In this document: positions 56,792 through 63,219 of the stretch, piece by piece
Position numbering within the stretch: the first letter of the stretch is position 1
How the letters are laid out: every line of letters begins with the position of its first letter
From: Calcarisporiella thermophila CBS 279.70
Lineage: Eukaryota; Fungi; Calcarisporiellomycota
Direction: 5' to 3'
NCBI RefSeq assembly: GCF_041956535.1
Contig: NW_027192192.1
Span: 623,796 to 687,795 of the forward strand
DNA: 64,000 nt
Made by a program: the position numbers and the translations under genes
Notes under the pieces: model-generated
What the model saw: the letters and a program-made list of their open reading frames with translations, nothing else
Database searches by the model: none
Told to the model about the DNA's origin: nothing

Positions 56792-57825
56792 ATGACACTG
56801 AAAGCTAATAACATACCGACTCGGATGAAGGTATCCCGAATGGAGAACATCATTGAAGAAATGAACTAATTACAATTCTGCCTGAATATTATGGCCGTCT
56901 TTTGCCTCGGTAGCAGCCCCGCTTCATATGGTGGTGCCTGCACCTCGGCACTTTAATCTGGAGCTTGTCCTTTTTCTTGAGTGTGATATTAATGCGCTCC
57001 AAGTATATACTTTATCACATTGCGTACTTGTTCATAGTCATTACTTATGCCTTCGTTACTTATCACTCATTCGGTGTAAGTAGTACAATTGATATTTATT
57101 ATGCAATTCTAACGAACTTTTGTCAATCAGTTACCCAAAGCATCCATGCAGTACCTGCAAAATATACTTTTGGATGAAAATACACAACACTTGATTCTCT
57201 CGCTTTACTTCTTATTTTCGAAGGCAGTAACAAGTGAGTAACTCTACCATTTAGAGTATATCTGGCAAATATATTAATGCAACTCTCTTTCAGTAACTTT
57301 GTTACCTTTCGCCATCTTCTCATTCTTCCATACGATAGATTATGCTTGCGTCCACCTATTCACCACATTTTTCTCGGAGCCATCCATGAGATCACATGAT
57401 TCCAAATCACTTCCCGTTAGGTTAAATCAAACTCTTATAAATTTGGTCCACAGCAATCACAAGAATGCCATCATATTTGTGTCATATCTAGAAGTCGCTA
57501 TAGCCATACGTCTGGTACTCGGAGCTCTTGTGTAAGTTATGTTTATTCATGGTCAAAATCAATGAAATTAACGCTTTTATTTTTCAGCTTCCGAAATTCA
57601 TTAGTAGCCGTTGCATTCTACGCCCACTTTTTGCGAATGCGATACCTCATGAGCCCACAGACGCGCTCTGCATTCAACCATATTGGAGACAGACTTGACT
57701 CCTTACTCTCTCCATCTAAGGATTCATCCTTAACTGGAAAAATCTATAGTCAAGCCAAATACGTCATGTCGCGCTATTGCGAGAGCACGGCTCTGCAGTT
57801 CCAAGCCATCAAGCCTGGTCAATAG
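56792..57825 (+). CDS. TMEM33/Pom33 family ER/nuclear-pore membrane protein
   Basis: LLDENTQHL, LLPFAIFSFFH, YAHFLRMRYLMSPQTR. Confidence 0.82.
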
Positions 57826-58048: not shown

Positions 58049-59970
58049 ATGGTAATCATTTGGAATTAGTACACTTCCTATAATCTGATCCTATAATGTC
58101 TTCTTCTGACTCCACAGTCGACTTACGAAGTCTCCATCACACTTAAAGCCGTTAGCCAAAGCTCTCGAATCACGCTCGAGGTTAATGGCAAAGTGATCAT
58201 AAAAAAGCTCATTGAATACTCCTGCCAGCGCATGGGCATTTTTGAGACATGGAAATATGGCCTGTACGTACATTTCCAAGCTTCGTTACTAACATATATC
58301 AACTGATTTATCTATGTTCAGATATTCAGAAACTTCGAAGACCTGGCTCCTTGATAATCATACCATAAGCATGCATTCCAGACGCGCCCTGGTAAGTAAT
58401 TCCGCATTCTATCGGAAGATAAACCCAAACGAGACTTATAGATACATCGCAATAGTCCTCTTTAACTCTTCAATTCAAGCGTGGGTCATATTTTAATAAT
58501 GCGCTTTGCACACATTCACCTACAATTAAGCAAACTATTAAGGCACATAAGTTTTACGCCGCGCACAATATCAGAGCAATTTTTAGCAGTGCGAAACAGT
58601 TTTTTCCTAAGAAATATGTGCCAAATAGCATTTATCTCGCTGCCGTCATCTTCGATAGTAATGATCGTATTCTCCTTACTCCACAACGATTCCTTCCTAC
58701 AGTGCCAATTGTTTTAAATGACCCAGCATACAACTGGCTTGACGAGTCCAATCCCGTTTTTATCTCTTTCTTGAGTCATTTTAGGAGTTTTGGTGACACT
58801 TTTTCTTACAAATTCTCAGAGGATCTCAACCCACCTCCGCTGAAGAACAATGCTTCCGCAATATCTGACAATTTGAATCAGGAAAGAAGATTATGTAAAG
58901 GAATGCTTCTTGCTGCGGATCGCATGAAGCTAATGCTTCAATTAGAGGATATCGGATTTGCTTACGACAGTGTAATTGAGCTTAAAGATTCTGTAAAATT
59001 TCTAGTGGTAATCCGATTCGTCGATGAAGCCACCCAGAATGTGGTGGCAAGCGAGCTGCTTAGACGACACCAATTGGTATGGAAGTCCCCGCGGGGATCA
59101 CTTATACGAGAACATAGGATGTTTTCAGAACTTCTGAACGAATATACATCTTTCTTTGCGTCGCGAAATTTTAGCGAAAAAGGCCTTTATTTAGGGTTTA
59201 GATCTATGCTATATTCGACTTTCACTTCATGGAATCTGATTTCTATTCTATTTTCTCATCTCAGTCTATTTCATCTGGCCATATCACCAGCGGGAACGTA
59301 CATTCTTGTTGCGAAGGGACGCAAATACATGATTCCGATGATCAGTATTCGCTATGAAAGTGATACTTTATCGCCAGAGGAATTGAAATGGCTACGATGG
59401 GTGTGCTCTTTGACCAAAAATGAGATCAGAGAGCAGATACATATGATTTCCTCTAACCCCTCAACTCGACTTGGTGGGTTCCAGAAGGATTTCATTAGCG
59501 CTTATTTCGATCTCCAGAGACACACGGTAGGGATTTCTTTTCTTCAGCTATTCCATACCCATACTCATTGAACAGCTTTTGTGAAGGGAATTGAGTTCGA
59601 CCCTTCTGATCTTTACTGCGATGGAGTTCTTAACATCTGTTTTCCATCTCTAAAATGGTGCGAATTTGCCGATGCAAGCGGAGCCTTAGATGCCGAAAAC
59701 CCTTCCTCTTCTGCTAACGCGATAATGATTGTGAAGCATTTTCAATACCCATCAGAGCCCTCCTCGCATACTCTCAACGATGAAGTGTTTTCATACTTTC
59801 CTATTAAGGCGTTTGAATCGTTGTGTTCAGCGTCGGATGTGCTACAAGAGGACGAGTACGGATTAGTTTTCAATAAGGCACAGTGGTCGAAGGAGCGCGT
59901 GTGGTACGCGCGTATTTCTGAATGGGATTTGCAGCGAAGTAGGAGTTGGCATGGGAATGGGACGCTCTAA
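58049..59970 (+). CDS. Uncharacterised protein: ubiquitin-like/FERM-F1-like N-terminus plus ANKFN1/WAKE-like C-terminal region
   Basis: Manual splicing of 5 exons (ATG|intron 58052-58117...). Motifs CQRMGIFETWKYGLY..WL, IYLAAVIFDSNDRILLT..FLP, LEDIG, GLYLGLF, SPEELKWL, PIKAFE. Family assignment is from recalled motifs only. Confidence 0.6.
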
Positions 59971-60355: not shown

Positions 60356-61895
60356 ATGAGCTGTACTATGGCAGATCCCGCCATTTTCTCAACTTACCAA
60401 GAAATCTTATCCGGAAATGTCGTCTGGTTAGTTGAATTCTATTGAAGCTATCAACTATCATAGCTATTCAGTGGTTACTAATGTGACATTTAAACAGGAT
60501 GATTCTAGGCTATAGTGGGACTCGAGATGTGATTTCTTTCTATTCCAAGGGAACAAATATGGATGAGTTTCGTAGAAATCTGAATGAAGACGTGTTGTAT
60601 GGATTCGTGCGGATTGAGGGAAGGTGTGCTTTTATCACCTATATGAGTGAGCAGGTTAGCGGAGTGAGAAGAGGTAATGGTCGAATTTTGAGTCGTCCAT
60701 CTTGGTACTTATTCTGATAACTTTCTTCATCGACCAGCTCGGGCTCTCGTCCACGGTAGAAGCATAAGTAGTCAGCTTAAGGTATAGCTAATATATACAA
60801 AAAATAAAATATCGAATTAGAATTAACAGAATGCTTTTTTTTTTTCCTTGCAACTCAAGGATTATGATGTTCATTTCACTGCTACTAGTTTGGACGATGT
60901 CAGTGACAACAGTTTGCGCCATCGTCTGAAGCTTGTACATTCAAACAACCGACGTTCCACATCCTCTGTCCAAGAAACACCGCCACTCTCCCCTGTAGCC
61001 TCGCCCGAACTCCACTCATCACGGGTAAGTGGCCAAAGTCCACCGATGCAAACAGCGAACACTCCGGTCAATACTATGGAACATTCCCCTACGTTGCCGA
61101 GATCACCGACAGCCTATACAGAGGAAGATAGCGAGGAGGAAGACCTTGAAACGTGGATGGAGGAGGAAAACCAATTGCTGGAGATGTATCCGGATAAACG
61201 AAAGTCTAAACAAAGATATTCTAAGGACAGTGGGGCATCCATAGAGAATTCACCTGGGCCAGCACCCCAACATCCACCCCCGGTTCCAAATGAGACTATC
61301 CCGGTGCGTCGAACTGATGGTGAAGAGAAAAAGCGGTCTCCCACCGCACGCAGTGAAAACAAGAATAAAGGGAAAGCTCTGCAGCCACCACCACTGGCAC
61401 CCCGTCCTCCTGAGACCCTTCAGAAAGACCCCAAGAGTATGCAGACGAAACGCTCGAGCAAAACGAATGGCTGGAAGGAAACAAATACAAACGCTGCTTC
61501 AAACGCAGTGGATATAAACGTAATGGTCCCGCTTATCCTCATATAGCTGATTCTTACTCATTTTTGTAATTTCGACTCATTAGGACCCAGACCAATTATG
61601 TGGATATATCTCATGCCAGGTACATCATGCTAGCTTCTGGAAGCGGCGCTGGTTTATCTTGAGTAATAAACGCATGCGATTGTACCGCGATTTTATGGAC
61701 GCGTGGAGAGAAAGAGATCCCACGAGAGTTGTTGATTTAAATAACATACGTCAGGTTGAGGCGGCCGAGGAAGAAGTGTTTATGCCCAACTCATTCCGAG
61801 TTAAATTCGATGATTCATCGCTTTACTTTTTCGCCGACAGTCCCAAAGGGCGCGAACTAGTTGTAGAATATCTCAAGAAGCTTTCGGTTTGTTGA
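60356..61895 (+). CDS. ADF-H (drebrin/coactosin-like) plus PH domain protein
   Basis: N-terminal WMILGY...LYGFVRI...FITYMSEQVSGVRRARALVH; Pro-rich linker; C-terminal CGYISCQ...WKRRWFIL...PNSF...FFADS. Confidence 0.75.
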
Positions 61896-62140: not shown

Positions 62141-63219
62141 ATGACAGAAAGCCAGATCCCGGATGCCTCTTCCCCAGACAACTTGGCGGTATATGTGGAG
62201 CACCTTAATTTCGATTTTGGAGGTCCTGCTATCCTCCAGGATGTAAACCTCGCTCTCCCCCGAGGATCACGTTGTTTGCTTGTCGGTGCTAATGGGGCGG
62301 GCAAAACAACGCTACTACGTATCCTGGCAGGTAAACGGATGGTGAAATCTACCGTCAAAGTTCTCGGCACGGGATCCTTTTCCAACCCGCCACCTGTAAT
62401 TATTGCTAAATCTCGAATGCAGGCACTCTTCTAATTATTATTGCATTAGATGGGGGTAACCTACCTAGGCACCGAATGGGCGTCCAATCCCGTGACTCGC
62501 AGTGACATTCGGGTAGATCATCTTATCCGCAGTATCGGTGGTGATCGCTATCCCGAGCGCCGTGATCTTCTCGTTAGTATCTTGGATGTCGATGAGACCT
62601 GGCATATGCATGAAGTTTCTGACGGCGAACGCCGCCGAGTTCAACTCGTACTTGGTCTATTGAAACCATGGGATTTGCTGCTTCTCGATGAAGTGACGGT
62701 CGATTTGGATGTACTAGTGCGCGCCGAATTTCTGCAGTTCTTGAAGCGTGAGACAGAGGAACGGAATGCGACCATTGTGAGTATGGGTGTATAGGGTGCG
62801 GATTTTACCTCTTTCTTATAGATCAATCTGTACGTGGTTAGGTATATGCAACACATATTTTCGACGGCATCGGCGAATGGCCAACGCACTTTGTGCGGAT
62901 GGTAAAGGGCACTGTAGTGCAGACTCATGAAATAACCAATTTCCCCGAGTTTGATGCATTCCGAGAATATCATCAGAAGCATCGTATTGCCGACTCTCCA
63001 CTGATGGCGATGTGTTTAACTTGGCTCAAACAGGTACGTTTAGTGCAGTTAGAATAATTTGAAGGGCTCTTTCTAATACAAGCGACATAGGATCGGGCGT
63101 TGCTTCGACGCGAGAAACTAAAGAACAAGGACGAACACAAACCGACACGATGGGAGGAATTGAGCGAGGATATGAAGACGTTCGGCGATCGCTATTATAA
63201 TTACTGGAAGAACTACTAG
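62141..63219 (+). CDS. CAF16: Soluble ABC ATPase, Caf16-like
   Basis: [50 protein letters not shown]. Confidence 0.88.

Follow-up and report, generated by a model that had tools for sequence, protein, structure and literature searches.

WAKE/ANKFN1 governs the timing of sleep, the polarity of neuroblasts and vestibular function, and the most conserved region of the protein carries no domain assignment (PMC4488434, PMC9210315). In holozoan homologues, the non-motif domains of this region are accompanied by CRIB and RA modules, and the first glycine of the GLYLG strand is required in mice (PMC4488434). A single fungal case, Mortierella verticillata, was described as having the non-motif domains only, and horizontal transfer was proposed for it (Zhang et al. 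2015, PMC4488434); Mortierella and Hesseltinella (Hesseltinella vesiculosa ORX58682.1) were listed elsewhere but left out of the analysis (PMC9210315), in a paper that also names a Trypanosoma candidate. The gene considered here lies at 58049-59970, on the + strand, of a 64,000-nucleotide stretch of the Calcarisporiella thermophila CBS 279.70 genome (contig NW_027192192.1, positions 623,796 to 687,795; the window), and was proposed in the original prediction to be a fungal member of this mainly animal family. Membership stood; fungal members had already been reported in both papers, and several Mortierellaceae proteins carry ANKFN1-derived names at NCBI. Computational analyses showed homology to the ANKFN1/WAKE/NMF9 core within an architecture of a ubiquitin-like domain, two tandem, probably Nudix-like repeats and a helical hairpin; they also revealed the internal duplication, a predicted Nudix fold without a Nudix box in repeat 1, and a link to fungal MHYT proteins.

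The sequence blocks quoted in the original prediction were all found in their place and order, including the one that spans the spliced intron 59196-59264, and the three conserved non-motif domains of the ANKFN1/WAKE/NMF9 group follow one another in the same order, with the GLYLGYLK-type signature and its invariant first Gly present as GLYLGLFH once intron 4 is removed. Direct BLAST against fish ANKFN1 was weak (E 0.005), so profiles were needed for the comparison; searches were run with individual exons, with the open frame that occurs naturally at 58456-59526, or with the database entry VTP21DRAFT_4357. A fungal-only profile retrieved fish ANKFN1 with an E-value of 2e-14 in a search of 5.8e9 proteins, the window protein scored 36.9 bits with a profile of 103 animal cores (3.5 at most among 500 shuffles), and the profile-profile alignment of fungal and animal families covered 394 columns with a probability of 99.8% and an E-value of 4.8e-29. 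A structure-atlas search with a predicted model of the Basidiobolus homologue (predicted local distance difference test, pLDDT, 85; a second model had 82) placed ANKFN1 clusters in its top three rows, with template-modelling (TM) scores of 0.58-0.59 over ~400 residues. The in-order match to the animal blocks was thus borne out in both search directions and in structure comparison, and by profile and predicted structure the fungal gene is genuinely related to animal WAKE/ANKFN1, homologous in the core, and not ANKFN1 proper. As had been anticipated, ankyrin repeats and FN3 are absent by Pfam, with no space for them in the 534-residue model, and there is no C-terminal RA domain, the protein stopping after the hairpin. 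No Pfam family matched the core in scans of the exons and family members, a single-sequence PDB search gave no match, and the atlas feature search returned nothing for an ANKFN1 core and only a weak Nudix lead (0.83). A profile match to Rrn9 (E 0.003-0.007) covered one short stretch and was dismissed as chance.

The predicted gene has six exons which, when joined in script, gave an intact single frame of 534 residues ending in TAA. Its five introns (58052-58117, 58264-58321, 58392-58455, 59196-59264 and 59527-59586) are all GT-AG and 58-69 nucleotides long, with a branch-point-like motif in four. Exon 1 (58049..58051) is the start ATG alone, followed directly by a GT donor and a 66-nucleotide intron with a CTGAC branch and CAG acceptor. 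The choice of start ATG is ambiguous among 57949, 57992 and 58049; each is a candidate ATG|GT one-codon first exon that can be joined to 58118 across an intron of 166, 123 or 66 nucleotides, respectively, and all give an identical protein. Exon 2 (58118..58263) encodes the N-terminal part of the ubiquitin-like (beta-grasp) domain and exon 3 (58322..58391) its middle, with E-values of 1.4e-7 and 0.012, both in register, against a profile built from homologues only; the two are supported by homology, since this profile ranked them first among 3175 six-frame pieces of the window. Exon 4 (58456..59195; profile E 2e-31) contains the final ubiquitin-like strand, the linker, repeat 1 and the beginning of repeat 2, exon 5 (59265..59526) matched at 5e-14, and exon 6 (59587..59970) completes repeat 2 and adds a shortened C-terminal helical hairpin. 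The NCBI record VTP21DRAFT_4357 from the same species (468 residues) is 100% identical to the last 468 residues of our model, so that introns 3-5 are shared with an independent annotation; it begins at an internal Met (58371), within exon 3, and therefore is without the first 66 residues, including all of exon 2 and the larger part of exon 3. In two relatives, the ubiquitin-like domain and the core lie in one uninterrupted genomic frame. Intron 4, 69 nucleotides, in frame and stop-free, interrupts the GLYLG-LF motif and has an unusual donor (GTTTAG); the 23 extra residues that it would encode are not present in homologues. An alternative intron at 59474-59575 was rejected, as it would delete a conserved helix. 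The gene is single-copy in the genome and this copy is divergent (branch 1.39; the family Trp motif lost; a short hairpin), yet its frame is intact.

The predicted structure of the core gave a top 50 of structural matches that were all of Nudix fold, AraR first, and a Nudix fold of about 130 residues was found in repeat 1 (58612..59157, + strand; residues about 126-307). Repeat 2 (59167..59829, + strand; residues about 311-488) opens with the GLYLG signature strand and spans introns 4 and 5. The internal repeat was detected with a probability of 92% and a score of 47 (15 for shuffled controls), and the secondary structure of repeat 2 in the predicted models matches that of repeat 1, from which we infer that repeat 2 is very probably also Nudix-like. 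PPX/actin-fold rows from Foldseek had a root-mean-square deviation near 20 Å and were dismissed as chance. The Nudix box, GX5EX7REUXEEXGU as defined in PMC5389931, was not found: in the family alignment the box helix has no conserved RE or EE, and Pfam gave no NUDIX match. These results suggest that the shared WAKE/ANKFN1 core consists of two Nudix-type domains that are probably inactive. The fold may already be labelled in AlphaFold-derived domain catalogues (TED, ECOD, InterPro).

The fourth row of the structure-atlas search was a Basidiomycota MHYT-domain cluster, with a TM-score of 0.50 over 359 core residues (subsequent rows were at or below 0.30). C. thermophila itself has three MHYT genes, all on the minus strand and each with a cytoplasmic tail homologous to the ANKFN1-like core (L016, G000:C18:~462100-464600; L017, G000:C9:~89600-92000; L018, G000:C4:~1291600-1294200). 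A core profile free of MHYT sequences matched one of them with a genome-wide E-value of 1.3e-11, in the reading frame that also encodes the MHYT repeats, and all three scored 25-37 bits. Profile comparison of MHYT tails with the core reached a probability of 97.5% in repeat 1 and of 78% at the beginning of repeat 2, and each tail repeat matched its own counterpart best, above shuffled controls. These profile and model comparisons showed that an ANKFN1-like core is also used behind MHYT domains in fungi. In the three C. thermophila copies no C-terminal hairpin was detected. In a bacterial regulator, the membrane domain MHYT has been shown to detect carbon monoxide (CO) via copper (PMC11347149). 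The fungal carriers appear to be uncharacterised; an Aspergillus protein, AFUA_5G11310, is named an MHYT domain signalling protein in PMC3576715. Low-sensitivity scans found no MHYT-tail pattern in metagenomes or prokaryotic genomes, and no core in viral contigs.

The MHYT tails also bear on whether the core is an enzyme. It might be an active but atypical hydrolase or isomerase of a nucleotide-sugar, dinucleotide or inositol pyrophosphate, its site lying between the repeats and regulated by the ubiquitin-like, RA or MHYT modules as MHYT regulates bacterial GGDEF/EAL enzymes. Bacterial MHYT domains are usually joined to enzymatic or DNA-binding outputs (PMC11347149), deviant boxes exist in some Nudix enzymes (PMC5389931), and repeat 2 of the animal proteins and of the fungal proteins with the ubiquitin-like domain has a nearly invariant Arg (IR), Glu (EEW) and Asp (DxY strand). 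These polar residues are, however, not kept in the MHYT tails, the positions shared without exception by every group hold structural residues (Pro, Leu, Phe, Gly), and no conserved acidic cluster suited to metal binding was seen, making an enzyme unlikely. By analogy with the non-catalytic Nudix domains of AraR, NrtR and DBC1, there is a good probability that the core is a binding or allosteric module and not a Mg-dependent pyrophosphatase.

The original prediction had likened the N-terminal ~70 residues to a FERM-F1 lobe. Profile matches and the predicted Basidiobolus structure confirmed a ubiquitin-like beta-grasp domain (58118..58494, + strand; residues about 2-86) of FERM-F0/F1, RA or RBD type; the narrower assignment was not favoured over the others, FERM-F1, RA and other ubiquitin-like folds scoring equally. 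A trilobed F1+F2+F3 FERM domain was not found, only the 80-residue beta-grasp domain matching, and profile comparison did not bring it particularly close to the C-terminal RA of ANKFN1 itself (Prob 1.7, E 0.03). RA, RBD and RA_2 were among the best Pfam matches (E 0.005-0.05), all sub-threshold; the best homologue reached 17.9 bits against a cut-off of 21. These RA-type matches, together with the repeated pairing of the core with GTPase-binding (CRIB, RA) or sensory (MHYT) modules, make it improbable that the protein is a pure scaffold, in which the Nudix-like fold would be a mere platform and the ubiquitin-like domain would make non-GTPase contacts (self-association, lipid, proteasome-type binding). 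The curated M. verticillata model, truncated like VTP21DRAFT_4357, starts within this domain, and it is likely that the truncation hid the domain from the earlier description.

A search of 1.8 billion representatives yielded 28 relatives. Counting later matches, the family is represented by no fewer than 18 named genera of fungi from two phyla: Glomeromycotina (Rhizophagus, Gigaspora, Acaulospora, Entrophospora, Ambispora, Paraglomus, Geosiphon, Cetraspora), Mortierellomycotina (Mortierella, Entomortierella, Actinomortierella, Gamsiella, Lunasporangiospora, Linnemannia), Mucoromycotina (Umbelopsis, Phycomyces, Radiomyces, Cunninghamella) and Zoopagomycota (Basidiobolus, Piptocephalis, Thamnocephalis). 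One homologue on a contig that looks fungal (lumazine synthase, Atg6 and P-type ATPase genes) is intronless, 1526 residues long, and has a 640-residue low-complexity N-terminus before the ubiquitin-like domain (ENA ERZ25039493 contig_51639, L003). Two metagenome contigs, L002 (ENA ERZ27250257) and L021 (Ga0209960_1003134), one GC-rich and the other with 27% guanine-cytosine (GC), encode copies that form a distinct clade with full support and that have a very long insertion in repeat 2; the contigs probably derive from protists, since their gene neighbours, PCIF1 and a RING-B-box-coiled-coil-filamin gene, are to our knowledge not typical of fungi. Horizontal transfer of the fungal gene from a holozoan protist, as suggested in print for Mortierella, would fit the single fungal case in PMC4488434, the failure of our family searches to find the gene with the ubiquitin-like domain in Dikarya, and a tree whose backbone is unresolved, in which Zoopagomycota do not group and no choanoflagellate reference is included. 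Set against this are the breadth of genera and phyla, the full support for Glomeromycotina, Mortierellomycotina and Mucorales+Umbelopsis as clades, the more distant MHYT-fused paralogue family in fungi, and the related copies on protist-like contigs. As judged from these sequences, genus breadth and supported clades favour vertical descent, and transfer seems very improbable. The suggestion of a free-standing ancient opisthokont module was supported as to homology, but the core is more widespread than supposed (MHYT fusions, protist-like contigs) and its predicted fold is recognisable.

Around the gene, the upstream neighbour terminates near 57825. Downstream, 60499-61895 encodes an ADF-H/cofilin-like domain at its start (Pfam E 0.001) and then a Pro/Ser-rich region, and 62141-63148 is a single-domain ABC ATPase gene (matches AAA_21, ABC_tran) resembling yeast CAF16.

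Overall, we lean towards an intact gene of the ANKFN1/WAKE/NMF9 superfamily that encodes a signalling adaptor, in which one conserved output core has been combined with several kinds of input: early-diverging fungi have a ubiquitin-like domain at the N-terminus, Holozoa have CRIB and RA with ANK-FN3, and fungi also have an MHYT membrane sensor. A non-catalytic signalling module is most likely because the same core stands behind three kinds of input, has a fold of ligand-sensing type and lacks catalytic residues. There is perhaps an even chance that the ubiquitin-like domain would bring the protein to membranes via a GTP-loaded Ras/Rap-type GTPase; more tentatively, the core and hairpin could relay the signal to a partner protein that they bind, perhaps under the control of a small phosphorylated ligand. 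A bolder and rather doubtful idea is that the core is a tandem pseudo-Nudix module sensing a metabolite, e.g., a nucleotide derivative, that predates the split of fungi and animals, perhaps even opisthokonts, and that fungi wired to GTPase-binding and copper/gas-sensing MHYT domains; if true, an adaptor gated by a metabolite would underlie the sleep, clock and vestibular phenotypes of animals. Fungal membership itself is already known; the breadth, fold and MHYT link are not in the papers found, and literature searches pairing ANKFN1 with Nudix and MHYT with Nudix returned nothing relevant. With a predicted fold and an apparently dead catalytic site, the biochemical role of a neural protein that is much studied yet unexplained can be tested through ligands and pocket mutants, and the compact fungal versions, free of ANK/FN3, should be easier to express and solve. 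Homology to the core would provide a first output domain for fungal MHYT proteins, and the core would have arisen no later than the opisthokont ancestor, instead of in Holozoa with possible transfer.

Among known systems, the closest are ANKFN1/NMF9/mWAKE of vertebrates and WAKE/Banderuola of Drosophila (CG45058), with which the fungal protein shares the entire non-motif core (domains 1-3, PMC4488434), colinear over ~400 residues, including the GLYLG strand and C-terminal hairpin; it differs in having ~20% identity and an N-terminal ubiquitin-like domain in place of ankyrin, FN3 and C-terminal RA. The published fungal homologues have the same core and belong to the same family, but their descriptions give the core alone and raise the possibility of transfer. 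Fungal proteins of the MHYT domain signalling type (PF03707) have a tail homologous to both repeats, in register, and differ in their membrane anchor, the lack of a ubiquitin-like domain and a strongly diverged repeat 2. Compared with the FERM F0/F1, RA and RBD beta-grasp domains of IDOL, ERM, talin, kindlin, SHANK3 SPN, RalGDS and Grb14, the fungal protein has neither F2/F3 lobes nor a PH domain and is thus not a FERM protein. From the non-catalytic Nudix domains of AraR (5bs6, 5dd4), NrtR (3gz5), the MutY C-terminus and DBC1, its core is set apart by 8-15% identity, tandem duplication, helical insertions and the absence of a DNA-binding domain.
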